From Tubulanus polymorphus (taxonomy: Eukaryota > Animalia > Nemertea), in contig NC_134030.1 in NCBI RefSeq assembly GCF_964204645.1, positions 1,905,355 to 1,969,354 of the forward strand: DNA of 64,000 nt. Reading direction: 5' to 3'. Position numbers and translations under genes: made by a program. Under the pieces are notes generated by a model. It was given only the letters and a program-made list of their open reading frames with translations. It had not been told where the DNA came from and searched no databases. Below are positions 14,501 through 63,500 of the stretch, one piece after another; the stretch's first letter is position 1, and each line of letters opens with the position of its first letter.

Positions 14501-17500
14501 TGCAAACATCGGACTCTGAAGCTGAAAGAAATCAACCAATGATTCATTGACAGTCACTCTTATACGGGACAAATTTCATCTTATCAAAAAAAGACCCGAC
14601 TTGAGCGGAGTCTACTGTACTCATTCCATCTCTAATAACTTACCTGGAATGGACTAAACGGTACTGGTAGAAAAAACGGAGATGAAGTGCTGCCACCTAT
14701 ATGCGGAGTTATAGTCGGCGTGGTAACAGCAGTCGTAACTCTCGTTAAACTCGATTCATCGCACGGCATTTTCGGAAGAACACTGAACCACGATTTCTGG
14801 CGATCCGACAAATTTTTCAGCATCTGTTCCGCGGATAACGACGTCGCCACGGTAACGGGCAGCGAATTAAACGCGTTCAGTCCGGAGAAATTATTATTGT
14901 TGAAAATTTGCGGCGACGACGACGAGGGGTTGGCAGACGTCGGATGTTTCTTACTGAGAATAGAGTCAATGCTCATGAATCCCGGATGAGTTGAGGAGGC
15001 AGGTAGTTTTGGGTTAGGGGTAATAGCACCGTTTGTTAAATCTGAGTCTTTTTTCTCATTAAATGCAGATGTATGATGATCACGCGTAGTAGGACTGTCG
15101 CCGTTTTGCTTCGAAGGAGAATTGGACGTTTTTTCCTCACAGTTTTTAGACGGTTGCCCCGACGATGATGTTTTCATTGTTCCGTCTTGTTTCGCTATTT
15201 CGATCAATTCGCAAAGTTTTGCCGATGTCGGTTTTTTCAGGAATAAATTGTAATCCGAAGATTTCTGATCATTGAACACTTTTCCATTCACAACTGACGA
15301 ACAATTGTCGTAAATTATTGAAGAAGTTTTTTTAGCACCGTCATTTGTTTTATCAGTTGTTTTATCTAATGTTTTATCATTTGTTTTATCTAATGTTTTA
15401 TCATTTGTTTCATCCGATTTTTTATCAGTTGTTTTATCATTTGTTTCATCCAATGTTTTATCAGTTTTATCATTTGTTTCATCCAATGTTTTATCAGTTT
15501 TATCATTTTTTTCATCCAATGTTTTATCAGTTTTATCATTTGTTTCATCCAATGTTTTATCATTTGTTTCATCCAATGTTTTTCTATCCAATTTATCATT
15601 TGTTTCATCCAATGTTTTATCAGTTGTTTTATTTGTTGTTTTATTGATTGTTTTATCATTTTTTTCATCCAATGTTTTTCTATCCAATGTTTTATCATTC
15701 AAACTATCATCGTTTAATCGATTATTTTCCACCGCTGGTATTTTTGTTTCTGCGGTGATATCTCCGTTTTGTACGGTTGTCACGGTGACAGTAGCGTCGA
15801 CAACGCTGTCCGGTTTGTTATATTTAATCTCCGATGAATTCACGTACCGGTTTCCGGTTAGTAAACTGTACGATTCTCGTTTCACGTCTATTTTCATGAC
15901 GTCCGTCGAAACGGAATCGTTTTCGCGTTTTATCGATTCCGTTTTAATCTCCGTGGATTCAGCAGTATCCCCCCTCTGGTGGTTCTCGTCAGAACTAATC
16001 TCACGCGATGATGATTGACTTTGTTCGATTTTCGTATTGATTTTAACGGGAATTTCATCCGTTTCTAAAATCTCTCGTTTGATTCCGTCCGAATTTAACG
16101 ACACTGATTCACTTTTCGATTCTTCTTTAATCGAATCGCTTTTCATTAAAGTATCCGACTCCGATTCCGTTTTAACCGGAGGAATCGTCGATTCCGTAGA
16201 ATTCGATTCTTTTTTAAGGAATTCCTTCTTTATATCCGGTTTACGAATCGAACCCGGTTCCGATTTCGCACTGGAACCTATTTTATCGTCGGATGGCTCC
16301 GGTACGACGACGGTCGACGTTTCGTCGTCGTTGGAGTTTAAAGTTTCCGAGAATTCGTGCGTCGATGATTCCATGCTTTCGATGTAGAGCGCTCCGATGT
16401 GAGGTAAAACCCAGTAACGTCTGTGATATCGATCCTGACCGAACTGCATCCCTCTCAGTTTATGAGACGACGTGAATACTTGTTCCCTCAGCGTCGCTTG
16501 TTGCTGGAAAATATAAACACCGAGAACTTAGAAGAAATCTTCATTTATTTATTCAACAAATCAGGGGTAAAGTCACATCTTAAGTCCAAAAGAGGCTTTA
16601 AAATCTTGAGACTGGTCTTAAATTGTTAGATTGGTTATAGAACCAACATCAGCTTACGCTGATCTTAAGTTGTTCATTGGCTATAGAACCAAAATGAGTT
16701 TAGACTGGTCTTATGTTGTTAGATTGGCTATAGAACAAAAATGAGTTTAGACTGGTCTTAAGTTGTTAGATTAGTTAGTAGATAGATTAATGAGTTTAGA
16801 CTTACTAGCAGCTGCAGCTTACAGCTGATTTAAGACCAATTCAATTCATTTACACAAAGATCTATTGCTTCTGAGTAATTACATAATTACATATAACAGA
16901 CCATCCTAGTTCTACAACCAATCTGAATAACTTAAATACCAGTCTATAAAAATCTCATTTCTATAGCCAATTTAACACCTCCAGACCAGTCTCATAAAAG
17001 AAGACCACTTTTGGACTTTGTAACTGTAAACCTTGTTTGGTTAAATCTGTCATATATATTTTTACCTTATTCAGTTTTTCTATCTTTTTCTCCAAATCTT
17101 CCAGTGATAAATTTTCTTCGACCTAAAACGAGTAACACGATAAATGTAGTAGGATATGAAGTCTGATTCCGGGTTCGCGGAATCCAATTACACAATTCTG
17201 CAGATGTAATTTGACACTTGGACTGGATCCAGTTGCATACTTGTGGTTATCAGTTTTTCTGAAATGGTTTGTATATATATATATATACCTCTGAAACGTT
17301 GACATGAGCTCCTATTTCACTGACGGCTCCGTCGCTATCGTTCCCGCTTTCATCTTCCTCATCTCCTCTCACATCATCCATCGTAGAATCGTTCAACGAT
17401 TCATTCACACTTTTATCTGGACGGTTTGTCTTTTTAGCTTGAATCGTTTTCAGTCTAAAAATAGAATTTCTCATTCATTTCACTCTCACAATACGTTAAC

Positions 17501-20500: not shown

Positions 20501-23500
20501 TCGTGTCTTATTTTGACAGAATTTTGATACCTAAAATAGTACTTGAAATATCTCCATGTGATAGATATCTATCTATGTGAATTGTACGGTCACCTCCAGA
20601 GATGTACGGTACTCTATACGATGTATTTGGATATTCTACATCTATACTGATATAACATATACAGTACGATTCCCTATCTTACCATGCTCACCATAACCAA
20701 CATTTGTCTCCTTCTTTCTCTTTCCTTTTTTTATATCGAAATGCAGCAATAAATATATAAGAGACATTTGTGTCAGAGGTGTGATCATCCAAATGATGAC
20801 TTACACTTAGTAAATTGAAGTCTTATCATCCAAATGACAACTAAATTGAATTAGAAATTCGGACTCAAAAGTAGAGACTACATTAGGACCCATTTCCAAA
20901 CTTCTGAGTTAGAGTTGAGATTAGTTCCTCGGAGTAAAGATAAGTCCATTTTGAATATTCTAACTCTAGAATCAGATGTAAGGAACTGTTGAACTGAGTC
21001 CAGCGTGGAAATGGCGGGGTTCAGTGCGCAGTGATGTGCTGACTATATAATAAAGACTTGACCGATTTTGTCTGTTCTGACAAGTTAAAGTGCTTGAATC
21101 AGAACTCATTACCTGTTCTTTCATGATAACAGCCTGATGCCTTTTTACTTCACGCTCCTGAAATATATGTAAAATGAGAAGAAGAGTTATAGAAGAGATG
21201 TGTTAACCTGGCGTAGAATCTGATCAGTAAATGTGAAAACGAATAGCTTTTTTAATGTTAACGAGATTTATTTAGAATACAATCTCTTGCTACTAGGGAA
21301 TTGAGTAGCTTCATCAGGTGAATGAGTACCAGTCGATGTAGAAACAATATGTGAAACTCCCTATAAATACTGTTGTTTCAGCATTGACTGGTACTCATTT
21401 ACGTGATGTTGCTACAATGCGCACTTGTAGCAAAAGCTTGTACTCGAGAATAAATCTAGTTCTACTATTTGTCTTTACATTTTGCTATATATGATAAATA
21501 TATGTGACAATATATACAGTTATTAATGATGCAGAGAATGGAATTCATGCTATTGAAAACATCTAAACACTTTACACATAAACAACTAAAGCGTTAGCAG
21601 CAACGAGAACACATTAATTACACGTAGAATTCCACAATTATCAGTTTAAATTTGACGATTTCATCGACTAATTCTAACTGAAGTCAAACTTCATCCTAAG
21701 AACCGTGGAACTAGGTCCTGCTTCAATTCAAAACTTAGTTTCACAAACAACTAATAGTTACTGAGCTGAGCTAACATAACTGTGCAACTTTGGAGCTGGA
21801 TCTATAGCCGTTTTGTGAAACTAAATCTTCTGCCATGTCGTCGCAGTCATGCCAACAACCCTTAGTAGATCGCTGTTACCTAATTCAGATTGTATATACC
21901 TGCCCGATCTAGACCGGTCTAAAGCCCATTTATTTGTAATGAAGTGATGACTGTGCAACGTCGGGAGATGATATAATAATCAACACTGATCTAAACTAGA
22001 AGCAATGAATTGTATCAACTTCCTGATTTAGTGGTGATATTGTTTTTAAACATTGATCGATGCAGTATACCGATAGTGACAATGCTGTGTACGTGTGTAT
22101 CCCATATCGTATTGTTTTTTGTAGAGTGCAGAATCATTCATCCTACAGGACGATAGGTGTTTAGTGGAATCCCAGCAGCGGCTAAAGATGAACCTAATAA
22201 AAGCTCAACTCGGTCTAAATATAGTAATGCGTAATAATTATAGTTATACAGAGTGTTCAGGAAACGATGTTTTATTTCTGACAATTGAATCGACTAATGA
22301 GTAGAATATAGATACACTACTGATTAGTTTCAGATCTGAAAGTGAGCTCGATGCGGATCTAGGTAAGTTGGAAGACCAGGGTGAAAAGAAAAGGCATTTC
22401 TCGGATGATACAGCCACACCAAAGCCCACTGGTGGGGGTCCCTTCCTCAGAACAAGATATTTTAGAAAGTGAGTGTTTAATTTGCAGTAGGTTTCAATGA
22501 AATCTATCTTGATGATAAGAGCAACACGGAGGTTAGGACCCCGAGACCATTCCCAAATCTGTCCCTGATGCACTCTTGAGTCTTCTTACTTCACAAAATT
22601 CATCTCTTAAGATGGCCATTTTCAACTTAACCACTAAATAGTTCGCTCTTTGGTCAGAAATACACTCGTGTATTTTTCCCGGATACTCTGTGTAACATGA
22701 AGGCAAGCGCACACGTAATTGGGAGGCGCACACGTGAAGGGAGGCGCACTTGTGTTGTTGGTATGTAGCGGACGACCACACTGACCTTGGCCTTTTCGAT
22801 CATTTCGATAAACTTCATGCGTTGAGATTCCTGTTTTCTTTGTCTTCGTTCCTGCAGTTCATGCATAAAAATGTCATCATGCGAGAGATATTTTGATTTG
22901 AAGCGGACGAACGAACGAACGCACGCACGCAGCCGAGAGATACATGCAGACATTTAAAAACACACGGGACGAAATCCATTGGAAATAAAAAGATGATCTC
23001 TAGTGTGAGATCGAAACGTCGTGTTCTTATATTTTAGATTGTTTCAATAAATGAATTCTCGAATTCTTTTAATTTGTAAATAGTGGGTTTTTATCTTATC
23101 ATCTGTCCACCACATTTGAGTGTGGTTATCGTACCAAGATGGCGGATGAGTAAAATATCTGTTTCCGTTTTTGGATAGAAAATATTAATTTCTCGAAAGT
23201 GAAAGATGTTGAAATTTGAATGTATTCATGTTCGACGATGAAATAGATTCCAGTTTTTGACGAGTTCAAAATAATTTCTTGTTTTTTTCGCAAAAAAAAC
23301 AACGTTTTTCGTCGTTTCGCTAAAAAAGTCCAAACGTCTGATTTACATTTTACAAATTCACTACACCGAAGGTATTTAAAATGATGGAATCACATTTAGA
23401 GAATACCGAGAGACAAAATCCAAACAAGAATTAGTTCGAATTCGTTTACACAACGTTACTGTTTCCATAATGGTGGAAAACGATGAACAGTTTTTTCTGT

Positions 23501-26500
23501 TTTTGATAAACCCTCATTTACTCAGAGACAGATATAGAGAGAGGGGAGAGAGGGGAGAGAGGGGAGAGGAGAGGGGTTATTAGAATCAATAACCCACAAT
23601 CAGAAGAAGAATGATTGCGGATCTCGATTCTACTACCAGCTTTAGAAAGTCTAATCAATCTCAACAGGGAGACTGAGACTCTCTCTCTCTCTCTCTCTCA
23701 CTCTCAACCTCTATCTACCTGTTTCTCTAAAACCACTAAACACCTCTGTATTTCTTCGCTCCAAGCAAATGAGGATTTATAGAAACATTTACAGCATGAA
23801 CCTTTAGCAGCTTAAAGAGTTTTATAATGAAAGCCATGCAGGGGGGTCAGACGTATATCATGTTTTGAATTTCGATGCTATACTCAACATGTTTGTTAAA
23901 GAAATTCTGCCAAAAACTTAGTTAGAAAGTTTGATAAATTCATCTTCATAAATAGTTCTACTAGTTACTGGTATTAGTATCTATTTGTTAATGAAAGATT
24001 TATCTATAAAAGCAGTTACCGGTATATGAAAAAATCTGTATTAGAAGTAAGGGGAAAAGGCTAGTTACAGTGGAACCTTGTTATAACAAACTATCTGTTA
24101 CGATGAACAGATTTTATGGTTCCCTGAAGTTTGTTGTATCAAGGTTCCACACTGTATATAGAACTATCCGTTATAACGAACAGATTTTCTGGTGCCCTGA
24201 AGTTCGTTGTAACGAGGTTCCGTTGTATGTACATATCCTGCATGGATTTCAAGATATCCAACGCACAACTGTAAGCAAGATTTGTATCATTCTATCTCTC
24301 ACTTACTTGTTCTCTAATCTGCTGCTGAAATGATACATAATGACAAATGTTCCTTTCATGGTTTTCTGTTTTTTTATTGTTTGTTTCTGAAGGAAAACTA
24401 AAAACCTCACTCGCCGGGGAACCTGGAGGTCTCATATACGAGATCTAGACCCAGTTGCACAGTCAAGACCGGTCTCGCTTTAAGTTAGATCTATAGTTTA
24501 GAAAATGTAATGAGCTTAGACTGGTTTTATCTGAATTTGTGGTAAAATATGTGCATCAAATCACAAATGAACTAAGTATCAGTAAATATAATAGGACCTG
24601 GCTTCAGAGTGACCGTAGACAATGTGTGAGGGTGCAAACTACCCAAGCCGGTCAATTTTACTTGATTCAGGTCTGACTGTAGAGTTCAAGAACATGTCAG
24701 ATCGCAGGACACAGAACTCAGCTCCACAGTTCGTGATTTAAACTTCACTTTGTTGGGTTAAAACATTGTAAACGAACTGATTCTAACGGTAAGAGAACTG
24801 TAGAACTGGATTCTGATGAATATTTAATCGATTGGCTCTCAATACCAGCAGAGTTTAAATCTGTCACGCTGTAGGTAGCACTATATCAGAGACTGAGGCA
24901 GTTATCATTATTTACCTCTAGTAATTGTTGAGCTCTCATTTCCCTCTCAATGCGTATCTGTTCTAAACGTTGCTGTCTTTCCTGTTCTTTATGATTCTTC
25001 AATTCTTCTCGTTGTTTCTTTCGTTCAAGTGCTGGAAATTATTAAACAACGATAAAAAATCTATCGTTATTTCATACGTTATATTCAGAACCAACATCAG
25101 CCGTATTCTTGAAGATGATTTGAAATGTTTATCAAACTACACTAGCTCAAGGAAACATTTCACTCTTTTTATTCTTAGTGTGCAGGGATTTTATATTATC
25201 CTTACAGCACGGACTCAGAATGTTTCATCAATGGTTATAATGAGGACAACATCAGTATTCCTGAAGATGACTATTAGGATAAAGTCGAAACGTTGATTTA
25301 ACTACACTAGCTCAAGGAATACAGTATTCCCGAAGATGACTATTAGGATATAGTCGAAACGTTGAATAAACTACACTAGCTCAAGGAATACAGTATTCCT
25401 GAAGATGACTATTAGGATAAAGTCGAAACGTTGAATAAACTACACTAGCTCAAGGAATACAGTATTCCTGAAGATGACTATTAGGATAAAGTCGAAACGT
25501 TGAATAAACTACACTAGCTCAAGGAATACAGTATTCCTGAAGATGACTATTAGGATAAAGTCGAAACGTTGATCAAACTACACTAGTTCAAGGAATACAG
25601 TATTCCTGAAGATGACTATTAGGATAAAGTCGAAACGTTGATCAAACTACACTAGTTCAAGGAATACAGTATTCCTGAAGATGACTATTAGGATAAAGTC
25701 GAAACGTTGATCAAACTACACTAGCTCAAGGAAACATTTCAGATTTTATTTTCACATCATTAGTGTGGGACTTTATATGTAATCAACACAGCATGGACTC
25801 AGAGTGTGTTCATCAATGGTTTTTCACTGGAGTTCTGATTTCGTCAGCCAAAGTTCTCCAGAAGTCACCCTCTGCGTTACTAAGACCAGCGCCTACGGTT
25901 TGTTTAACTCTCCTGTTGTGTATATGCTACACATTCAGATGCAGCTATGTACTCTACAGATACAGATAACTATGATATTTTTACCTCTCATTTGTTTGGC
26001 TTTTTTCAACGATTCGTATTTCTGTAATTTCTCCAGGCGTTTTTTCGCTTTAATTTCCGCCGCTTTTTTGGCAATTTCTGAAACGCATGAATTACGCAGA
26101 ATTAACGACGAAATATAGTCACTTACCGCAGTTAGAACAGTTCGAATACAATACCTTGTTGTTCGAGTTTTCGTTTTAATTTTGTCTCGCTGTAAGAGCA
26201 GCCCTCCCGCAGACCGACCAGTTTACGTTTTTTAGAAGATGATTTGTCAGTTTTTAGAGCGGTCAGCGCCGCCTGGTTTCGTGATAACATGAATCGTTCT
26301 GTCACCTCGGTTTCCGACAGTAATACATAGCCCTGCTGTAATACACATATGTAATACATTAATAAGTAGATACAGTTAGTTCTCTATGAGGTGTTGATGG
26401 TCTACAGGGTCCTGTTTTTACGAAAAGATTAAACTCCAATTTTTGGTTTTAATTGCTATTGGTTGGACCTCATGTTTTCAACGAGGATAACAATATTCAA

Positions 26501-29500
26501 ACTTTACTGATTTTAGCTTAAACACTTTAATGAAAGTGGTTGGAAGATTGTTTATATGAACAGCCACTGGAATTTCCATAAAACTCCCAAGTTGTTATAT
26601 ATACAAGAACCAGAATCGAAACTTACAATTATGTACTTTTGATTCAAACAAAAATTCTGTAAATTCAACCGATCATTCGACTCTATCTATTTGGTTTTCA
26701 ATTTCAAAATCAAGTCCCAATCAAATCAAATCATCCAATAAATAAGCGGGACAATCATTTTCGAGGATTGGTGGGGTTTGTAAAGAATAGATGAAGTTAG
26801 TAGTTAAATGAAAACCTACATTTTCTCGTAATTCTAAGAAATCACCGACGTTCACTCGCGGCCGGAACGTGAAGTTGTCTAACGTCAGATCAGTTATGTT
26901 GTTCTTCTCCAGATACTGAAATACAATACAATGAGATTCAGGATCTACTTAACTGCAACTATATTTGTGTCTGTTCATCATAAGGTACAATTGCATAACC
27001 ATAAGAAAACCATAAGACTGGTATAAAGTTGTTAGTTTTTATATGGAAGCTAAATGAGTTTGAAAATGGTCTGAACTTGTTAGATGGGTTGTTGTTTTAT
27101 AGAATCAAATAAGCTTAGACCGGTTGCAAGTTGTTAGATTGGTTATAGAACCAAAATGTGCCAAGACTGGTCGTATATCTTAGTTTTGACTCTGCAACTG
27201 GCCCAAGGGGCTAAATCTATAGACTATTGGTCTCATGTCTAAGCCACAACGGTGCAACTGACCTCTGACTACGAGTCAGGGTTAAAACTGAACTCTAAAT
27301 GAACTGATAGTTAAGGAGAGGATGGGTTCAGATCTTACCCGCGTAACATCAGGATAAGTTCGTAGTTTTCTACTGCATGGAGTATGATAAATAACTTCAC
27401 CCAATAATCCACCTCTAGAACTAACTGATTTAATTCTCGTCTCGCGGCGCCACCTATAAACAAACATAGCCATTACCGATACTGTATACACAGCCACAAC
27501 CAGAAAATGGTGGCATTTTTGAACTGACACTACTATAAGCTCAATCATAGGGAGGGGCTGTTGAAAATGACAACGTACTTTACATATGACTCTCAATGGC
27601 TAAAAACTTCGAGAATAAAATAGACAATAGTTTATACGAACCCGTATTCTAATGGAATTCTTAACTCTGTTTCATCCAGTAACTTTCTACGTTTAGGTTT
27701 AACTACAATAAAACAGAAAGAGAGACAGAGATGAATAAATGGAATTCAGAGGTTAGGGGTAAAATAGCTCTAAAGTTGGTAACAGTTGCTTGATGGATAA
27801 ATGCTGAAATGACAATTGAAATAACAGCTGCCCATCGATGCTCAGACAGGTAACCAATACTGACTGAGCTAGGCCACACGGCGTCTTCACAAGCAAAGAT
27901 GAAATAGACATTAACCAGTGACATCTTTACACATTCACGATTCTAATGTAAAGAGTGTGAATTCAGACGCAGTCAGTTATAACTCACCCTCACGTTTACA
28001 ATGGTTTGTCCACAAGTTAACTCTTACCAACAACTTTTGAGCAATTTCTTTTTAAGTTTTCCCTTTTTCTATATTTTCCTGGTTCCCTGAGTTTTCCAGG
28101 TCAGTGCCCCCCCCTGAATCTGCAACCTGTGATATCTTTAGTAGACATTCACCATTCTAATGTAAAGAGTGTGAATTCAGACACGGTCTGTTTTGAGAAA
28201 CTCACCCTCAGCGTCGGAATGTTGATTATCGTCTTTTTTGTTGACTCGTTTTTTACGTTTCGGTTGTTTTTCAGTTCGTGTTTCACTCATCGAACGGTCG
28301 GAACTACTTTCACCCGATTCACTTGAACTATCGCCAGAATCGGATTCTGAAAATATAATTACGCGATATTATTACGATATTATTACAATTTTAGCACGTT
28401 TGCTGTCACTGTGATTATACAGCGCTGCCCCCTATTGCCACTAAGAGTATACCAGTTATTGGCAATCAAACTGTTACATGGACAGCTGTTGTTCAAAACT
28501 GACCATTGGGAATTGAGAATGAAACAAGAGTTTGTTAACATTGCCAACCAATCAGATTCCAAGATGGATCGGCTATGAGATGTCTCATAGTGGCAATGAT
28601 GGCTGAACTGGAACTATGAGATATAGTGGCAATGATGGTTGAACTGGAACTATGAGATATCTCATAGTGGCAATGATGGCAGAACTGGAACTATGAGATA
28701 TCTCATAGTGGCAATGATGGCTGAACTGTAACTATGAGATATCTCATAGTGGCAATGATGGCTGAACTGGAACTATGAGATATCTCATAGTGGCAATGAT
28801 GGAAGAACTGGAACTATGAGATATCTCGTAGTGGCAATGATGGCTGAACTGGAACTATGAGATATCTCGTAGTGGCAATGATGGCTGAACTGGAACTATG
28901 AGATATCTCGTAGTGGCAATGATGGCTGAACTGGAACTATGAGATATCTCGTAGTGGCAATGATGGCTGAACTGTAACTATGAGATATCTCATAGTGGCA
29001 ATGATGGCTGAACTGGAACTATGAGATATCTCATAGTGGCAATGATGGAAGAACTGGAACTATGAGATATCTCGTAGTGGCAATGATGGCTGAACTGGAA
29101 CTATGAGATATCTCGTAGTGGCAATGATGGCTGAACTGGAACTATGAGATATCTCGTAGTGGCAATGATGGCTGAACTGGAACTATGAGATATCTCGTAG
29201 TGGCAATGATGGCTGAACTGTAACTATGAGATATCTCGTAGTGGCAATGATGGAAGAACTGGAACTATGAGATATCTCGTAGTGGCAATGATGGCTGAAC
29301 TGGAACTATGAGATATCTCGTAGTGGCAATGATGGCTGAACTGGAACTATGAGATATCTCATAGTGGCAATGATGGAAGAACTGGAACTATGAGATATCT
29401 CGTAGTGGCAATGATGGCTGAACTGGAACTATGAGATATCTCGTAGTGGCAATGATGGCTGAACTGGAACTATAAGATATCTCGTAGTGGCAATGATGGT

Positions 29501-35500: not shown

Positions 35501-38500
35501 AACAGTTCACAGTTCCAGGGTTCAATTTGACTGACTTAATCTTGTAGTTAAAGAGACAAATGTTAACCCTAGAACTGTGGAAACTGAGTCCTGGTCTACT
35601 ACATCTTATTGTGGCAAAGTCACAAGATACTACAGGTCAAATCCCTGCCGAGGGAGGAACGTGGCAGTCTCATAACGCCAAGTTCAAATCCCTGTTGAGA
35701 GAGGAACATTGCAGAGTCCCGAGACGGCATCAGGTTCCTTTGCAGTCTGTTATGGTAGGCTTTTGCACATTGAACCGAGTTGGAATTTGGAATGAGGAAC
35801 TTAAGACTGGATATAATTCTAACCAATACAAAAACAATAATAGATATAAAACTTGTACACATTACAAAATGAAAGGAATACAAATATCTATCTGTACACT
35901 TCGTTTGATAAATAGAGGTTTTTAAAAATACTAAATCTATCAAGACCGACACAAGTTTACACAGTAAAAGGGGGTAAGAATAGTATCTGAGAAACAGATA
36001 GAGAAAAGTTACAGTTATATATATATATATATACATCATGATCATCTATTCTCAGTTATAAATAATCCCTCAATTATGATATCTCAAAGTTTATCTTAAT
36101 CTGAAAGTTTTTAGGTTTAACTAATATCATCAATTAGACAGGTTTTATTTGAACACATTCCACCGGCCGCTTCTATCAGGTTTACTGATTACGCCATTCC
36201 GGGATAGAGGATATTCTAGTTGAAACTAACGTGTCAGAAGAGAATTCCAGATTGGTTAAGACTGGCAAGTGAGGGGCTGAAGTTGCTGAAAAGTTGGTTA
36301 AAGATAACCGGTGGATGAACCGTAGTAACAATACAATTTCAATGGTCACTATGTCAACCATCCACTGTGCTGATTTACTCTAAACAACTTTTCAGTAACC
36401 GCAGCCCCTGAAAGATAAACTTTGAAATATCAACAATTTCGAGATAATTCATTTTGATCGACGTTGAGGTCTTACTTTGAGGAGTTGCTACGTGCGCCGA
36501 TTGTTGCAGTAACGTATTGAATCCGAACAGGTCGGTTACAGCAGACGTATTGTTAGAATACGACGACGATGACGTAGGTGGCGACATAATCGATAAACCT
36601 AAACTACCCGTGAAATAGTCACCGGTTGCCGCCGATGAGCCGGTCGCCGCTGCTGCTGCTGTACCAGTCGAACCAGCTGCAGCCATTCTACGAGCGTGCT
36701 CAGATGCTAAGCGCCACCAATCAGCGCCACCTATATTGTACATTAACCGTTAATCATTCTTTTCTCTTATATTTGTGGCTTATGTCGGGATATGCAGGGG
36801 GTACCGGCTCTTACCACCAGATGGCGCAACTATTTTTATATTCATTTTCAATGCAATTTGAACTTGATATTTTGTCTTCCAAATCTGATAATCATCGGAG
36901 ATAGATACACAATCCACTTTATCAATCAGTGCAAAGACGAACTCAATGAACTTAAATACATTTCTGAGAAGTATGATTTTTTTAGGGTAGAATATAAAAT
37001 TAGCCAAAGTATTCCTGAAGATTGACTATTAGGATATTATAGGTTGAAACATTGAAATAAACCAAATATCGTTTTAGGCGGCCCTCAGATTCTTTCCATT
37101 TCTCAACCGTATTGATTCAACAATAGAGGAATCTGTATTGATTCATTCAAGTTAATGATCCAGGTACTAGTCATCGGTTTAGTCATTTAACACTAGATGG
37201 CAGCACGCGTTCTATCAGAGTAATAAATGTAACAGACATTAAAGACAATTTGTGTCGAAGCTAGCTGGCGAACATTCCTCTCTCCCTCTCTCTCTCTCCC
37301 TGCCGCTTATCTTTGCATTTATATATGACATGACACAGATGACACATCACCATGGAAACAACTAGGATTCTGAGGCAATTTAATATCTGAAAGTGATGCC
37401 GGCAAAAACAGAATAACCTGCACTGAATCGCATAGTCAATTACTTCAGTTTATAGCATTATCAGTGCTTTCTATTAGACATCATCGGTTAGTACATAATA
37501 TCTCTCCCTCTCTCCCTATCTTTATTAACAGTCATCTTATGTTAGCGTCCGTTTACCGGGCCTGGACAAACGCACATATACACATACCCACCCCTGGACC
37601 AAACCCTGGGCATACTCCCGGCCACATTCCTGGACACAAACAACTTGCTTTAACTTGACAGGTTTCACAGTTCTCAGTAGGTTTTAGTTGATCTCAAACT
37701 CTAGTCATTATACTTCTATAAGATCCTCAAAATTTCCCTTCAGATTTTACTTAACCATTCATGAAGATCTAAGCCATTGGAATCATTTTTTTAAAACAAA
37801 CACTCCTAGTTTTTCAGGCAAAAAATTGAATGTAAAATATATCTATCATTTAAACAGCTAGGGATGAATCAAGATGGAAGCACAAGGAGCTCATGCTCCC
37901 GTCACAATTTTTCTGCGCTCAACAGGGACTCGTCACAATTGATAGTGAATGAATAAAATCAGTATCAATGACCAACACCAGTATCCCTGTATAATAAAAG
38001 AAACAAGAGTGCCACAACTAATCGTCTACGTGAAAATGACCTTTCCTATTCAATTCTAATTCAATCGACTGTAATTCCAAAAATTCTCAACCGATTCACA
38101 TGAAATCAGCTTTAATACAAACTAGAAAACTTTCTGCTTCCAACGAGCCTTTAACCACCACTCTACGACAAATATCTCACAACGAAATCACTGTTTATTT
38201 ACGGGAGATAGCTCAAAATGGAGGTGTACAGATTCTATGGTGGACAGCAAAGATGGCAGTTTTTTTAACTTCAGGCAGGTTTTATTCATTCACTATTAAT
38301 TGTGACAAGTCCCTGTATATTATTCAGGGACAATTCTTCACCTGTAACTCAAGGGGAGGAAGGGGAGGAGTTTACACTTAGCCTTATATTGTTTTTATTG
38401 TCATCACACGAGTTCCTGGAAATTGTATTAAAAATCATTTAAATTTCCAAACATTTCTCAACATCCGTTTTGACTACGCGGACGCTTAACTCGCCAGTTC

Positions 38501-54500: not shown

Positions 54501-57500
54501 TGTTGTTGCTGATGTTGACGAGTGACATAAGGAACCTCTTGATAAAGAAACTGCCCTCAGTGAGGATATCTTTAAAAACTAATCAGGGAATGTTTGGAAA
54601 AGGGTCAGGAAAATCAAGAATTCTAGATTCTCTGATCCGTTAGAACTATGTATTAACCCTTTCAGTGCGTCTACACCGCAGTGCGGTGTACGAATCAGTG
54701 GTGGATTTTGCTGGTACACCACACTGCGGTGTATTGTTTAATTAGTTATTACTAATTATCTCTCTTGAAAGATGGCAGCACCTGTCAAACATAGTGTACC
54801 GCGCCAGGGTGTAGACGCACTATAGTGCTATTCCCGTTATTCAACACACTAGGGTGGAATTTTTCAGAATTTTCAAATTATCTTCAGCACTATTGGGTAT
54901 TAATTAGCCAGCACTGAAAGGGTTAAGTGAACTGGGCTAGCTGTACCCAGGGTAAGGGAGTGCGGGTACACTTCGCTTTCTAAGGGTTTTGTTGCTATTG
55001 TGTTAATGTTCGACTGATTTATACGTTATAATGTGTTTGATAGTAGGAGTGAAGAAGGAAGGTAAGAATTATGTTGTTCTTCAGCTTCAGTAGTCTTTCT
55101 AGCATCATCCGTAATTCCAGCTTTGTGTTATTAAAACTAATGTTGAATACATACATTAACTGCTTCATTGAAGTTAATTGCATAATTGCAGTTTAGTTGA
55201 TTCTATTAAAATGTAGGTAGATTTAACATTTTAAAGCCCTATTGCGTTTATTGTGAATTTTTTCACTTTTCCTCACACTCACCTTACTGAAAGTGCTAGG
55301 CATCATTATGCAAGGGCTACGCAACACAATAATAGTCAGACATGAATTGGCTACTATCTGTCACGGTGACCAAAATATAACAACTCATTGCTTTGAATTT
55401 GCTGCGTTCCAAAAATTTTACATTCCTGATAATGAAAGTAGTTTACTAAAAATACTTAATTCATTAAAACATGAAATTGCGTAAAAGCTGACTCGAATTG
55501 AATCTCTGTTTCTCAGAAAGCTCAGTGCACACAATTTCAATATTTAATATGAGGACAAAATTCAGTATTCCTGAAGATGACTATTAGGATAAAGTAACAA
55601 TGTTGAATAGTCTACACTAGCTGAAAGGAAACATTTCAGACTCTTATTATTCTCATTGTGAACATCATGTTTACAGAATGATACAGAATGTTTCACTAAT
55701 GGTTATGATAATGTTTTATTTTATTTTTATTTTTTTGTTTTATTTTATTTTTCAGTCAGGACGGAGTTAAAGAGATCGACGCGTTGTTGGGTAAAGCCAG
55801 ATTCTTCATGATGCGTCATAATTTCAGCGGCGCCCTCGAGTTCGTCAATCAAGTCATCGTAGCTTTCCCGACGTTTATCCCGGGATTCATCGAAAAAATG
55901 AGGCTGCAATTAGCCGTACAGGATTGGGAACAGACTATAGACGTAACGCATAGGTATGATCTTTATTTCGTTCATTTGAAATATTTGTTAAATTTGATGG
56001 ATTGTAATATTTGTTAAATTTGATGTATTGTAATATTTGTTTTATTTGATGGATTGTAATATTTGTTAAATTTGATGGATTTTGTAATATTTGTTTTATT
56101 TGATGGATTGTTATATTTGTTAAATTTGATGGATTGTAATATTTGTTAAATTTGATGGATTGTAATATTTGTTTTATTTGATGGATTGTTATATTTGTTA
56201 AATTTGATGGATTGTAATATTTGTTAAATTTGATGGATTGTAATATCTGTTTTATTTGATATTATCTTCAGGGCGTTGAGTTTAGATTCTCACTGTTTGG
56301 AGGCGATACGTTTTCAGATTTTGAATTTGATTTGTCGCGATGGTAACTATCAGGAGGCGGCGTCGCGTCTGGGCGATCTGTTACAACTAATGGATCGAGT
56401 TGAACCGAAAAATGCTGATAAATTCTACGAATTATCGAGAGGATTTTGTAGAATTGTAAGTTACTCGACACTTGCTGTACTCATTTACTCATTCCTTTTC
56501 ATGTCTGGTGTATGTAGTGTATTTTCAATTGAAAATGTCTCAGATGAAGCACTGAACACATGTGAAGTGTGGACGATCAGTTTCTGAAAGTGCGCTGATA
56601 AAATGTCTGGTGTTTGTAGTTCATTTTCATTTAGAAATGTCTCACGTTAACTACTGAACACATGTGAAGTGTGGACGATCAGTTTTTGAAAGTGTGCTGA
56701 TAAAATGTCTAATATCTGGTGTTTGTAGTTCATTTTCAATTAAAAATGTCTCAGGTGAAGCACTGAACACATGTGAAGTGTGGACGATTAGTTTTTGAAA
56801 GTGTGCTGATAAAATGTCTAATATCTGGTGTTTGTAGTTCATTTTCAATTAAAAATGTCTCAGGTGAAGCACTGAACACATGTGAAGTGTGGACGATTAG
56901 TTTTTGAAAGTGTGCTGATAAAATGTCTAATATCTGGTGTTTGTAGTTCATTTTCAATTAAAAATGTCTCAGGTGAAGTACTGAATTTGCTTGCGGCCTG
57001 GTTTGCTCCAGACTGAAGGGTTCAGTGTCCACGCAGCAGATCAATAACGTTGTAAATTCTAATGAATCTGTTATTTTTTCAGGCGAGTAGAAATACCGGT
57101 ATCTTACAGCAGACGTATTTTATGGCTGAACGAGCAGTCGGCCTCGATTCAACGAACGCTGAATATGTTAATGAGCTCGGGTATGAACTATTGTTACAAG
57201 GTCGCGTGAAGGACGCGATGAAATGTTATAAAAACGCGATGAAATTGGATGAGACGAGCGTCGCTGCGTTGACAGGTAAAGATTAACAATCATAACCGTT
57301 ACGCTCTCAAGTCAAGTACTCTGACTTGAGCGGAGTCTACTGTATCATCCAACTCAGATATCACTCTCAAGTCAAAAGATCAGACTTGAGCGGAGTCTAC
57401 TGTATCATCCAACTCAGATATCACTCTCAAGTCAAAAGATCCGACTTGAGCTGAGTCTTAAAACTCAGATATTGCTCTAAATCAGACCAATTTAGTCCCT

Positions 57501-60500
57501 AAAGACTTTACTTAAGTGGAGTGTACTGTCTCAGTGCCCAGTGATGTTTATTTTGAATATTTCAGGTATAATTCATTGTCAGTTATTAGAGGATCAATTA
57601 GAGGACGCGGCTCAACAATTAGAATTCTTAAACGAAATTCAACAAAGCATCGGAAAAACATCGGTAGAGATTGAAATCCTCAATTCTTTGATAGTTTACT
57701 TGGCGACTCACATTTTGAAGTTCCGATCTTTGATTGTTTCAGGAATTGATGTATCTCAGCGCCGTGCTCGCTCGTAAACGTAATCAAGATCCGCAAATAG
57801 TTCTACAGAATCTCGATGAAGCGATTGAAACACATTTCATCGGTATCAAGGTAAAAACACTACTAAACAATTCATTATACCTGTAGCCTCTCCCCCTCTC
57901 ATTCATTATACCTGTAGTAGCTGTCAATCAAGCCTCTCCCCCTCTCATTCATTATACCTGTAGCCCCTCCCCCTCTCAGACATGTGCTGCCTGTGATTCT
58001 TACAAAACTGATTGAAGACTTCACTAGTTTTTCCTGTCTGGACGCAAGGCATTGAAATGAATTATATTTTTACCTGAAAATTTAGAGACTTCATGCACAG
58101 TTGTCTGAGGGTGAGGCATAAATTGATAGAAGAGAGAAAACCTAAATATTTGTGATGATTTATTTTTACAGGATTTACCGCTGGGGCCGGATTATTACAT
58201 GTATTTGAATCCTGATTTTCTACTACAAGTAATTAATGAGTATTTGATGTACGCGCCGCAGCAGGTCGAGAGTCAACAGAATCAGGGAAACCCGGTACTG
58301 AAACGATGTACGCAGATATTAGAACCATTGAATCGCGCTGTACCCGGAATGTTAGAGGGTCTCTATCTGATGGCTAAAATCAAATATATTTCTGGTAAGA
58401 ATTATTGTATTTTCTGTTTTGGACCTTGTACAGGTATGAATCTACATTCACAGACATTCACTATTGTAAGTGTGAAGTGTGGACGATTAGTTTTTGAAAA
58501 TGTGCTGATAAAATGTCTAAAATCCGATGTTTGTAGTTCAATTTTAACTCATAATGGGGAGATAGAAGTGTGGATGCTCAGTTTTTGAAAGTGAGCTGAT
58601 AGAATGTTTAATGCCGGGACGCAGTTCCACTGTTGTTTGTTAAGTTTGATTCTGAAGTTTGGAATAGTTGATAACAAATGTTTGTTTAAATCATCAACTG
58701 TAGAATTGGATCCTTGTGTTTGTAGTTAATGTTCAATTAGAAGTCTCAAAGTCTCAGCGAGATTCAAGGTTCGGTGCTGCATTGAAATCTTTAGTGCAGA
58801 GTTTAGGCTGTAGATTGATACCTGGGCCCAGTTTCACAAAAAAGTTGAACTCAAACTTTTGGTGTAATCGCTATTGGTTTCTTCATTTCTTCAATGAGGA
58901 CAACTATTCAAATTTAACCGTTTTAGATGTAAACTTTTTCGTGAAACTGGGCCCCGTTTTAGTTCGTTTCGTATTTTGATTTGTTTATTTATTTAAATGA
59001 TTTATTTATTTTCAGGTAATATGGACGCGTCTCAAAGTATCCTGGAACATTGTCTGGACGTCGATCCGTCGATGGCGATGGTTCATTTATTACTCGCTCA
59101 GATATTACTAGAGAAAGGCAAATATCAACAGGCGGATCAATCGTTAGAAATGGGATTGAGTCATCGATTCGAGGTTCGCGAACATCCGCTTTATCACTTG
59201 ATTAAAGCTCGTATACAGAAAAAAATGAACGAAAACGAGGAAGCAGTGAAAACTCTTCAGAGCGCGATGAGTTTACCGGGAGTTCGTAAACGAGGTGAAT
59301 ATAAGTAGAGAGTTTGAACTCGTAGTGAACGCATTCGAGGGTCCTGTTTCATGAGAATGTTTTAGCTTAAAACGGTTTAGGTTTAAGTAACCGCCATGAG
59401 AAAAATCCCGCAATAAATCAGCCATTGATGCAAAGTTTTTGATTAAGAAGTCTAGATATTTGACATCACTAAAACATTACTCAAATATATGAACTTTTTA
59501 CTCAAGAACTTTACACCTGTGCTTGAATTACTGTGGGATTTCTCTTGTATTCATCTTATACAGATAATAAGTATCTTCTCGACTTATTATGAAGTAACCA
59601 GCAGTAATCAAACCCCAAACGTTTGAGTTAAAACTTTTTCGCGAAGCCGGACCCAGTTTGACAAATGTCGAAGACGAATATAGTTTTAACAACTTGTTGT
59701 TATGTTGTTTATAGCTATGCGTCCAGTTCAAAGAAAACCAGGTCGACAACAGTTAGATATCAGCACGAACGACAGAGTATCGGTGTTCCTCGAACTCGCT
59801 GATGCTCATAGACTTTGTAATGAACAGGTTTGTCATCAAATTTATAATATCTTCTCGGTTTCACTGTTCTCTCTTCGGTTGCAATATGACTGTTTTGGGT
59901 GACAGCATTGGTAATGAACTAATTTCTAGTGTTCCCTTTCATAAAAGGTTTTAAGCTTAAAATCAATGAGTTTGAATTGTTAACGCTGAAAACATGAATT
60001 TACTGACTGCAATTAAACCAAAAATATGAGAGTTAAACTTATTCGTGAAGCTGCATTCATCGGATTCAATTTTCTTCAGCACGAAGCTGTTAAAATCATG
60101 CAAGACGCGATCAGTGAATTCGAAGGAACTCCCGAGGAAATACGTATAACAATCGCCAACGCCGATATATCTATCGCCCACGGCGACGTAGATTCGGCTA
60201 TTAATACGTTACGTAACGTACAACCGGGTCAGCCGTACTTCGTCCAGGCTCGTGAAAAAATGGCCGAAATTTATCTACAACATCGTAACGATAAACGACT
60301 GTACGCCGGCTGTTACAGGTTCGTTTCAATAATTCAAAATTCAAATCTAACCGATCGTTCTGTTGCGTTAACTGGTCTGATTTATTTGTATAGAGAATTA
60401 GTGGAGAAGAATCCTACACCTCATTCTTACCTGTTACTAGGAGACGCTTATATGGGAATACAGGAGGTATGTACAAATTATGACGTAATAATGTTTGTCA

Positions 60501-63500
60501 GAAATTGTGTCGGACACACTGAGATTATTGCAGGGTCCCTACGACTCCTTGATTCTTTTAAAACGCCTAAACCAAAAATATTTTTCAAGGTCCTTGAATA
60601 TCCTTGAATTTTAGCAAAATGTCCATAAGTCCTTGAAAATTCCTTGAATTTTGAGAAATTGGCAATTAGGAAATTTCTAGGTTTAGGGTCTAGTTATTGT
60701 GCACAGATTCCATCGCATTGATTGGTTTACTAAGATAAACAGAACCGATTTAGAGGAGTCTACTGTAATTGGGATATGAACGTGATGCCGAAGCTTCCTC
60801 ACAGTTTGAAATTGTTATCTATGAAAACTCATTGAAAAGTTTTTGAATTCTGGAATGACTGATCTGTAGGAGCCCTGTATTGTCATAACGTATATCCTCG
60901 TTACAAAAGTCTGTGAATTCTGGAATGACTGAACTGCAGGAGCCCTGTATTGTCATAACGTATATCCTCGTTACAAAAGTCTTTGAATTCTGGAATGACT
61001 GATCCGTAGGAGCCCTGTATTGTCATAACGTATATCCTCGTTACAAAAGTCTTTGAATTCTGGAATGACTGATCCGTAGGAGCCCTGTATTGTCATAACG
61101 TATATCTTCTGTGAATTCTGGAATGACTGATCTGCAGGAACCCTGTATTGTCATAACGTATATCCTCGTTACAAAAGTCTGTGAATTCTGGAATGACTGA
61201 TCTATAGGAACCCTGTATTGTCATCATGTATATCCTCGTTACAAAAGTCTGTGAATTCTGAAATGACTGAACTGTAGGAGCCCTGTATTGTCATCATGTA
61301 TATCCTCGTTACAAAAGTCTGTGAATTCTGGAATGACTGATCTGTAGGAGCCCTGTATTGTCATAACGTATATCCTCGTTACAAAAGTCTTTGAATTCTG
61401 GAATGACTGATCTGTAGGAGCCCTGTATTGTCATAACGTATATCCTCGTTACAAAAGTCTCTGAATTCTGGAATGACTGATCTGCAGGAATCCTGTATTG
61501 TCATCATGTATATATCCTTGTTATATACATTATCTATTTGTAGCCGGAGAAAGCAATCGAAGCGTATGAAGCTGCTTTAAAGAAGAATCCTCGCGATTCG
61601 TCTCTCGCTAGTAAAATGGGTCAAGCGTTGTTTAAAACTCATAATTACGGAAAAGCCATCAACTATTACGAGGCCGCGTTAAAATCAGGCAATCAATCTC
61701 ACCTCAGGTCAGATAAATAAAATGAATAATCAGGCTTGATTTTGGCTGTATCCCAGTACTAGGGTGCTAGAACTTTTTGTTTGAATACTAAAAATTGGAA
61801 TAAAACTATCCCGGCAGGATTCAAGAAATGTCAGATTTCACCGTAAGAAGATGTTTAATCCAATTCTTTCTTGTGTTTTCTTAATTAGAAATTTAGATTA
61901 AAGGAGTAAACTGGGATATTAATCATTGATGCTGCATGATACCGACAATTTGTATCCTGAGAAAATACTCCCTAAAATTTGATGCCATAAATCAAGCCTC
62001 GGGCCGGGATTTTACAATTTAGACTCAAGAGCTGATTGTTTATTGATTGTATTTGTGTGTGTGATGTTTACAGATATGATCTCGCCGACCTGTTACTGAA
62101 ATTACGACAGTACGAAAAAGCTGAAAAAGTTCTCAAACAAGCAATTGAACAAGATGATTTAGGTACAAATCTATTCATGTTTACTGAAGCTGTGTCTTTT
62201 TAATCCAAATTTGTATTTCTAATTCAATTTACTAAGTCATCATTTGGATAAGTCGTCACATTACTGAAGTCATCTCTATTTTTAAGCCCTATTTTTGAGT
62301 CTCAATTTGTATTTCTAATTCAATTTACTAAGTGTAAGTCATCATTTGGATAAGTCGTCACATTACTGAAGTCATCTCTATTTTTAAGTCTCAATTTGTA
62401 TTTCTAATTCAATTTACTAAGTGTAAGTCATCATTTGGATAAGTCGTCACATTACTGAAGTCATCTCTATTTTTGAGTCTCAATTTGTATTGCTAATTCA
62501 ATTTACTAAGTGTAAATCATCAGCGTAATGATCTTGGTCACAACTACAATGATTTAACTGATTTAGACTGTGTAAACTGCCTCCCCCCACAGTCCCAGCT
62601 GTGTAAGATGTTTCCTATGATGACATTATTTTCCTTGTATGAGATAAGATCCCATTTCAGACGACACCTGCTGGTCTGTCTCAGATCGCGCGTGTTTTCT
62701 ATTTGGTCGAGATTATTAATGATATTTCTTACATCTCATTAGTTTAAGTCTGAGGAAAATCTAACATCTCAATAGATAAGAATCATAATAATGATTGCGA
62801 GTTGTTTCTTTGTTTCAATAATCGTTTTATTCGTTGATGAAACTTGTTTCTTTTTGCAATATTTTTGGGGTACATACCTTATTTAGGTCTTAACGTAACC
62901 CCTAGAATCGCAGAAGTGAGTTGAACCATCAAACTTAATGCAAGTTCCATACTTCTTTTACTCATGTTGAGAAAAGGGACTCGATTGAGTAAAATAGCAG
63001 TGATCGGCAGGGGTTGATAATGAGTTGTTTGTTTATTTTGTAGGCAGTGATCTTCAGGGTCTAATGCAGAAAACTCGATACTATGTGTTACTATCGAAGG
63101 TCTATCAGAAAGTTGGACGTGTGGATGAGGCGTTGACTAATCTGAATAAAGCGAGGGAAATGCAGTCCAGGTAGAATTTATTCACAGAAATGTAAACTGA
63201 AGGGAAGGCTGACTTCACAAAAATCTGCCTGTAATCTTCTGTTCAGCGTCCTCACCAGTTGCGATCAACAATAGATTTTCTAGACTGGTAACCGGCCTCT
63301 ATTTCTAATAAGCATTTTTCATGATTGGTTAAAGTCTTTCAACTTAACCAAGTCTTGAAAATGCAATCCTCAATCCTCGCTGAGAAAATATCATCGAAAG
63401 TATTGCTGAGAAAATCTATTGTTTATTGATAAAGGTGAGGTTGCTGATCAGAACACAAGATTAGTAGACGTGTCTAGTGGGTTTTTGAAGAGTCGGCATT

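Follow-up and report, generated by a model that had tools for sequence, protein, structure and literature searches.

We analysed a window of 64,000 nucleotides from the nemertean Tubulanus polymorphus (contig NC_134030.1, positions 1,905,355 to 1,969,354 of the forward strand); "window" refers to this whole stretch, and positions are counted from its first letter. The subject of this work is a short tandem repeat that lies in an intron of a minus-strand gene and whose units are laid out as minimal hammerhead ribozymes (min-HHRs). Tandem Repeats Finder detected a single array at 25253-25733, with a period of 69, 7.0 copies, 97% matches and no indels. The seven 69-bp units (25253..25735, plus strand, register CAGTATTC..GGAATA) start at 25253, 25322, 25391, 25460, 25529, 25598 and 25667. 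They were also recovered as repeat families, and the covariance model (CM) matched 7/7 of them with 61.5-75 bits. The unit reads CAG-TATTC-CTGAAGA-T-GACT-ATTAGGATAA-AGTC-GAAA-CG-T-T-GAATA, followed by a linker of 22 nt. This is the hammerhead order: 5' strand of stem I, C3-A9, a bulged U, the stem II hairpin, G12-A14, A15.1, the CG insert, U16.1, U17 and the 3' strand of stem I. An earlier note on this DNA had described a 69-bp minisatellite of seven copies, each with a hammerhead layout that included the bulged U and a loopless ACGU stem III, and we obtained the same period, copy number and order.

We searched the window with a relaxed min-HHR descriptor (helix I of at least 4 bp, CUGANGA, a bulge of 0-1 nt, helix II of at least 4 bp, a loop of 3-12 nt, GAAA, a palindrome of 0, 2 or 4 nt, U and H). 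The only matches in the window were at 25399 and 25468, in units 3 and 4, and the descriptor found 0 sites in 40 Mb of dinucleotide-matched null sequence. A pattern of the 34-nt core gave 7 matches in the array and none elsewhere in the window (0 expected). Unit 3 (25393..25438, plus strand, CM 75 bits) is a complete min-HHR consisting of stem I GUAUUC/GAAUA(A), CUGAAGA, the bulged U, stem II GACU/AGUC, GAAA, CG, U16.1 and U17, with predicted cleavage after 25432. Unit 4 (25462..25507, plus strand, CM 75 bits) is also complete, and its cleavage is predicted after 25501. The core nucleotides (C3U4G5A6N7G8A9, G12A13A14, A15.1-U16.1 and an H17 that is not G) are kept in units 1 and 3-7. Unit 2 (25324..25369, plus strand) has the core mutation U4->C (CCGAAGA). 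Its stem II is 6 bp long (T variant) and its substrate strand (GUU followed by GAAUA) is intact; its site after 25363 could be cleaved only with the core of a neighbouring unit. Stem I has 5 bp in units 2-4 and is broken in unit 1 (GATTT) and in units 5-7 (GATCA), where GAATA is expected. Helix II is closed by G10.1-C11.1 and has 4 bp in the window units with the A variant and 6 bp in unit 2, and the palindromic stem III ACGU is present in 7/7 units. The completeness of copies 3 and 4 and the defects of the other copies had been reported before, and the sequence confirms them. The description of the array as seven hammerheads holds for the layout but is an overstatement for ribozymes: only 2/7 units are complete, and sites that combine an intact substrate strand with a neighbouring intact core are at most three (after 25363, 25432 and 25501).

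None of the Rfam hammerhead models matched (E<=10 in local searches; gathering threshold on the window), and a search of the whole genome with RF00163 left the array unmatched and gave a single 22-bit match elsewhere. These misses are expected, because the models require a stem III hairpin and stem III is loopless here. Therefore we rejected them as evidence against the motif. A motif-model search, proposed earlier as a check, was positive with the min-HHR descriptor and negative with Rfam.

None of the public sequencing runs is recorded as RNA. We examined four of them, from one study, as contigs; run X1 behaves as genomic DNA, with a depth of ~30x on unique sequence. One spliced contig of run X4 joins 26155-26312, 25985-26077 and 24916-25031 on the minus strand. 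Therefore X4 is RNA-derived and the array is intronic. The exons upstream (25985..26077, minus strand) and downstream (24916..25031, minus strand) of the array's intron are supported by this contig and by open frame. The host gene comprises an MBD exon (27285-27599), coiled-coil exons flanking the array and a WSD exon (14635-16527), which fits a protein of the BAZ2 type. The hammerheads are on the strand antisense to this gene, in agreement with the earlier statement that the repeat is antisense to BAZ2B. The host pre-mRNA cannot be cut, because it carries the complement of the hammerhead. Sparing of the host mRNA is a passive result of the antisense orientation and no sign of a function, and the intronic copy is most likely a passenger without host function, a piece of neutral baggage.

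Diverged copies of a larger unit flank the array (repeat families, BLAST). The whole element spans approximately 25087-25821 and comprises a degenerate monomer of a 167-nt type, described below, without stem II, six 69-nt units and a final unit running into a tail. The leading monomer (25087..25252, plus strand) was aligned by BLAST to the last unit plus tail (80% over 124 nt) and contains a weak CM match at 25103-25135 (16.5 bits). In this monomer CTTGAAGA replaces CTGAAGA and a 13-nt deletion takes stem II; GAAATGTT and the full 98-nt tail follow, and the copy is predicted to be dead as a ribozyme. The tail of the last unit (25736..25821, plus strand, 167 type, monomer positions ~68-151) was identified by BLAST and by the array-end analysis, in which the window locus is L001; homology stops at CAATGGTT. 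No convincing target-site duplications were found at the window insertion (25087, 25821). Neighbouring units have private variants in common (GATCA in units 5-7, TAGTTC in units 5-6), which show local duplication inside the array.

Contigs of runs X1-X3 contained an opposite-strand joint between two unit positions (25259/25332), and therefore inverted unit junctions exist somewhere in the genome.

The genome-wide satellite and Penelope-like elements

Genome searches were made in the assembly to which the window belongs (77 contigs, 268 Mb). With the repeat as query, BLAST gave at least 334 matches on many contigs (at least 11), with arrays longer than 2 kb, and pure 69-nt arrays of dozens of units occur at many loci. 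Elsewhere, copies of the 69-nt unit are interleaved within single arrays with tandem monomers of 167 nt; both types share their first 67 nt, and the monomer has a 98-nt tail in addition. Higher-order repeats of 236 bp (69+167) and 570 bp (69+3x167) were present (L008, G000:C8:3711553-3714772; L003, G000:C8:234252-237471). As the first 67 nt are shared and both units are interleaved, the 69-nt unit is the 167-nt monomer minus its tail. Contig C6, 23.0 Mb long, has its matches in distal regions (0.24-2.35 Mb and 17.6-23.0 Mb). When the whole genome was searched with a covariance model, identical satellite copies saturated the result, and no new families came out of it. Unrelated tandem repeats adjoin hammerhead arrays at L016:1-700 and L003:494-1100; the unit of one is 81 bp long and includes a tRNA-like GGTTCGAA box, and that of the other is 60 bp long.

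The genome contains at least 150 GIY-YIG matches, many of them within open frames of 817-841 aa. In three such frames Pfam identified RVT_1 together with GIY-YIG, which is the architecture of a Penelope-like element (PLE). In the type that we call PLE-A (L046, L048, L049, L053) an intact open reading frame (ORF) has on either side of it, on the sense strand, a hammerhead identical to that of the satellite, with the two copies about 2,857 nt apart. The PLE-A unit measures about 2,858 nt from hammerhead to hammerhead, and its protein, with reverse transcriptase (RT) and GIY-YIG domains, has 833-841 aa. We cut both the PLE-A unit and the monomer at the predicted cleavage sites and aligned them. 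The last 43 nt of the monomer were 97.7% identical to the end of the PLE-A unit, and the first ~115 nt aligned to its start (85% over ~100 nt to the variant at L035). The 167-nt monomer equals the first ~115 nt plus the last 43 nt of the PLE-A unit, without the 2.7-kb interior, and in the 69-nt unit the same last 43 nt are joined to only the first ~24 nt. Since both unit ends are kept, each unit is a PLE tail-to-head junction that rebuilds one hammerhead. Some arrays come right after PLE-A pseudo-long terminal repeat (pLTR) sequence. There was no RT+GIY-YIG ORF in or next to the window array, such ORFs being at other loci; the window array is a derivative and not a PLE. The earlier note had suggested a minimal self-processing RNA; the unit is no stand-alone RNA of this kind but a doubly deleted remnant of PLE termini. 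It is not an independent invention and belongs to a known kind, the class of PLE min-HHRs and retrozymes without long terminal repeats (non-LTR retrozymes).

The same core is present in PLE-A, in a second type, PLE-B, and in other variants, and both PLE types have the stem III ACGU. In the PLE-A master form helix II has 6 bp. In PLE-B (817 aa) CUGAUGA, the bulged U, GAAA, ACGU and U17 are retained; stem II is GGCUAA/UUAGCC versus GACUAU/AUAGUC, and stem I is ACGC/GCG versus UAUUC/GAAUA. Further hammerhead variants have GGCUAAU/AUUAGCC, GGGUGGU/ACCACCC or GAUCUC/GAGAUC in stem II. The PLE type at L047 (820 aa, two ORFs) had no convincing hammerhead. PLE-B also has a second, decayed hammerhead-like copy ~380 nt downstream of the main one (L044:2570-2616 and L044:75-126 (-)), with stem I GGGGC/GCUC, a 7-bp stem II, a 2-nt core insertion or 7-nt duplication, and ACAU for ACGU.

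Eight hammerhead variants of this genome were compared; they had been gathered with a structure-aware model, which favours paired matches. Paired cells amounted to 81.9%, versus 59.9% in shuffles (0/500), and to at most 43% when partners were slid. Changes on both sides were seen in 11/12 pairs across the eight variants, while G10.1-C11.1 was invariant (8/8). In helix II 91% of cells were paired and 5/6 pairs changed on both sides; in helix I 73% were paired and 6/6 pairs covaried. Across PLE families this argues strongly for a real hammerhead.

A relic of a different PLE-type hammerhead lies in the window at 22990-23020 (plus strand), with stem II GATCTC/GAGATC, the loop TAGTGT and GAAACGTC (GUC triplet). 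It has AAA in place of the 5' core CTG and provides a compensated stem II variant for the covariation set.

In published PLE min-HHRs helix I has 4-5 bp, helix II is long (6-8 bp) and a nucleotide 5' of stem II is unpaired (PMC4209133, PMC6765202); helix III is absent or a small palindrome, and they act as dimers with low in vitro activity (PMC4209133). Our observations support a genuine minimal type-I hammerhead of the PLE kind, whose stem III is a tiny palindrome and which would be expected to act solely as a dimer. The earlier assignment to a dimer-acting, PLE-type minimal type-I hammerhead fits this published architecture, and the extra base after A9, which had been called tolerable, is a published trait of PLE min-HHRs (PMC4209133).

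Origin of the array and the evidence for and against it

From these comparisons we consider it very probable that the array belongs to a satellite of the non-LTR-retrozyme type that is spread over the genome and derives from this genome's PLE-A, and that it is one local copy in partial decay. Judging from published motifs, a hammerhead without a stem III loop would be active only when two copies pair via the palindromic ACGU (double hammerhead), and cleavage would follow GUU, leaving 5'-OH GAAUA... and ...GAAACGUU>p ends. In PLE-A, trimming of tandem transcripts to unit length would take place ~106 nt before the first AUG. Mini-units, which have no ORF, would undergo the same processing and be copied in trans by the PLE enzyme, and the arrays would then grow and homogenise at the DNA level. 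In the window intron only sites 2-4 would still be cleavable.

Several observations, from folding, published assays, conservation, read depth and array ends, weigh against this reading. The double hammerhead of adjacent units is nested and can be drawn, with the 25-nt linker closing stem I of one composite site and with ACGU/ACGU as stem III. By nearest-neighbour calculation, however, for two 69-nt units it has -4.5 kcal/mol bare and -9.1 kcal/mol in the best structure containing the fold, versus a minimum free energy (MFE) of -22.2 kcal/mol; for two 167-nt monomers the values are -54.4 and -66.6 kcal/mol, respectively. In the MFE structure of two 69-nt units each unit is self-closed via GUAUUCC/GGAAUAC, a palindrome made by the deletion junction. 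The 69-nt double hammerhead lies 13-18 kcal/mol above the MFE because this junction (GGAAUAC.A.GUAUUCC) sequesters stem I. The double hammerheads in cis between neighbouring units, as suggested earlier, are possible in geometry but disfavoured in energy. The A variant, present in 6/7 window units, shortens stem II to 4 bp, and the MFE of its 46-nt motif is a non-hammerhead fold; with the T variant, the PLE master form, the 46-nt motif folds as a hammerhead. The MFE of the circular monomer was no lower than that of shuffles (z = +0.74 for 167 nt, z = -0.50 for 69 nt), unlike in the described circular RNAs (circRNAs) of retrozymes. In published assays PLE min-HHRs cleaved poorly in vitro (PMC4209133), and 8/9 predicted Xenopus retrozyme dimers remained uncut in vitro (bioRxiv 10.64898/2026.07.22.740005); failure of predicted motifs at the bench is thus frequent. 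With co-transcriptional kinetic folding and protein chaperones, cleavage could still occur, as proposed for PLE hammerheads (PMC6765202).

Among 217 non-redundant genomic units variant sites amounted to ~1-2% throughout (core 1.5%, linker 0.9%, loop 0.8%), so that the core is no better conserved than the linker. The hottest variant sites were CpGs at C11.1, G12 and G16.2, and all four features were kept in only 129/217 units. Per-site variation among these units gave no selection signal; the family is too young (~1-2% divergence). Conservation and covariation of core and stems had been named earlier as a test of the ribozyme: the core is not preferentially conserved within the satellite, but the stems covary across PLE families.

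The ratio of word depth in X4 to that in X1 was 0.055-0.13 over the array; for two other repeats of this stretch it was 0.66 and 0.25. Depth over the array says nothing on expression, since ~1x background from thousands of DNA copies would explain it. Two interspersed repeats of very high copy number were present in the window at 24036-24303 and 27118-27251, with word depths of ~31,000 and ~63,000 in the DNA run versus ~30 for unique sequence, and the former contains direct repeats of 73 nt and inverted repeats of 23 nt. Compared with the hammerhead array, both have a relatively larger share in the RNA-derived run.

We also compared the ends of 26 arrays (L001-L030). At the 5' side the boundaries gather around the point where the hammerhead segment starts (monomer positions 160-19), at the 3' side they are scattered over tail positions 66-157, and no boundary of the 26 arrays falls at the predicted cleavage site 42/43. 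Because the ends miss this site, copying of HHR-trimmed linear RNA is not evident. Growth at the DNA level from PLE tail-head junctions could have produced this pattern, and so could the copying of templates that were multimeric or circular.

We weighed three other explanations against the PLE-A-derived satellite. One is a pure DNA-level satellite: unequal crossing-over or replication slippage would have multiplied a 5'-truncated PLE insertion or a PLE tail-head junction, recombination would have spread it, and the hammerhead would be an inert sequence in neutral decay. It would account for the private variants common to neighbouring units (GATCA in 5-7, TAGTTC in 5-6), for the higher-order repeats, for CpG decay at core positions without excess core conservation, and for the distal location of the matches on contig C6. 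We nevertheless regard it as somewhat unlikely, because without transposition the repeat could hardly have reached hundreds of separate loci, introns and solitary monomers among them, on at least 11 contigs, and because the units keep exactly the two ends of the PLE RNA unit, as is classic for non-autonomous derivatives that are mobilised in trans. That this is an ordinary variable number tandem repeat with a coincidental resemblance to the hammerhead can practically be dismissed. The lack of an Rfam match is in its favour, but the null-sequence search, the identical motif in the PLE terminal repeats and the compensatory changes in both stems in other PLE families refute it.

An active ultra-small retrozyme, along the lines of the earlier note, seems improbable to us. 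Here cis double hammerheads would release 69-nt RNAs, a tRNA ligase would circularise them, the circles would template new arrays, and the intronic copy would trim antisense read-through. Such a system would agree with the completeness and adjacency of units 3 and 4, with the nested and sterically possible double hammerhead, with the pure 69-nt arrays at many loci, and with array ends that are permuted relative to the cleavage site, as rolling-circle copying would allow. It has to contend with the energy gap and the sequestered stem I, with the 4-bp stem II and non-hammerhead MFE of 6/7 local units, with higher-order repeats of 236 and 570 bp, for which one 69-nt circle cannot serve as template, and with an array that is not enriched in the RNA-derived run and whose core is not preferentially conserved within the satellite. 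We also very much doubt that 69-nt or 236-nt (69+167) units are transcribed, cut by cis double hammerheads, ligated to circles and copied as rolling circles by the PLE enzyme; if this were true, they would be among the smallest ribozyme-processed circular RNAs known, and the permuted array ends would be explained.

Relation to known hammerhead repeats

The PLE-A-derived satellite resembles the PLE min-HHRs, as these are described in PMC4209133 and in Lunse, Weinberg & Breaker 2017 (as cited in PMC6765202), in that the motif stands in the pLTRs on both sides of an RT+GIY-YIG ORF and is predicted to act only as a dimer. It differs in that the motif is also present in ORF-less 167- and 69-nt tandem units and in that H17 is U (GUU).

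Metazoan non-LTR retrozymes are low-GC tandem repeats of 150-450 bp with a type-I HHR and highly self-paired circRNAs of 170-400 nt (PMC7229834), and Li, Clavereau & Pollet 2026 argue that retrozymes derive from PLE pLTRs (bioRxiv 10.64898/2026.07.22.740005). The satellite shares with them low-GC tandem units with one type-I HHR each, dimers to long multimers, dispersed solitary monomers, and co-occurrence with autonomous PLEs whose pLTRs have sequence in common with it. Li et al. define active retrozymes by two or more consecutive units that have a complete type-I HHR and an MFE cut-off of -5 kcal/mol; units 3 and 4 fall within this definition, and their 46-nt motif, with an MFE of -5.2 kcal/mol, is just past the cut-off. 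The 167-nt parent is at the low end of the 150-450 bp range. The 69-nt unit had been considered far shorter than described retrozyme monomers, which does not hold: consensus lengths of 51-972 bp have already been reported (bioRxiv 10.64898/2026.07.22.740005), and therefore its size is not unprecedented. The differences are that non-LTR retrozymes have a canonical HHR with loop-loop contacts, whereas the one found here is an atypical PLE min-HHR, and that their RNA is highly self-paired, whereas here the monomer is no more paired than shuffles. In addition, the internal deletion of a specific PLE with both termini retained is directly visible here.

In the double hammerheads of newt satellite 2 and avocado sunblotch viroid, as PMC4209133 and PMC6765202 present them (citing Forster et al. 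1988), stem III is likewise weak or absent and tandem copies pair via a palindrome to form two composite sites. Their stem III has 1-2 bp and a loop and their monomers ~330 or ~247 nt, whereas here it is loopless and the spacing is 69 or 167 nt.

The satellite is an unusually clear invertebrate case of the origin of a hammerhead retrozyme satellite: an apparently intact PLE would have lost its interior in two steps (2,858 -> 167 -> 69 nt), and exactly both ribozyme-rebuilding RNA ends were kept through the deletions. It supports, outside vertebrates, the proposal that animal retrozymes are non-autonomous Penelope derivatives. The 69-nt unit is also a compact natural substrate for tests of dimer-dependent hammerhead cleavage. 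The Sm-alpha and Sj-alpha repeats of Schistosoma are hammerhead repeats that resemble short interspersed nuclear elements (SINEs). Like the satellite, they form a high-copy invertebrate family with a type-I hammerhead in each unit; Sm-alpha has a Pol III promoter and an HHR that is canonical and active as a monomer, features not shown for the 69-/167-nt satellite.

Other features of the window

Two further members of the satellite family were found in the window, both on the plus strand. A solitary monomer of the 167 type lies at 55549..55712 (CM 44.9 bits), and its GAAA core is destroyed (AGTAACAATGTT). A solitary decayed hammerhead fragment lies at 37008..37060 (CM 33 bits), with insertions in the bulge and loop and with CpG->CpA in stem III. 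Downstream of the solitary monomer, at 58130-60604 (plus strand), a gene resembling TTC21 (IFT139) has exons in which Pfam identified ARM_TT21 domains.

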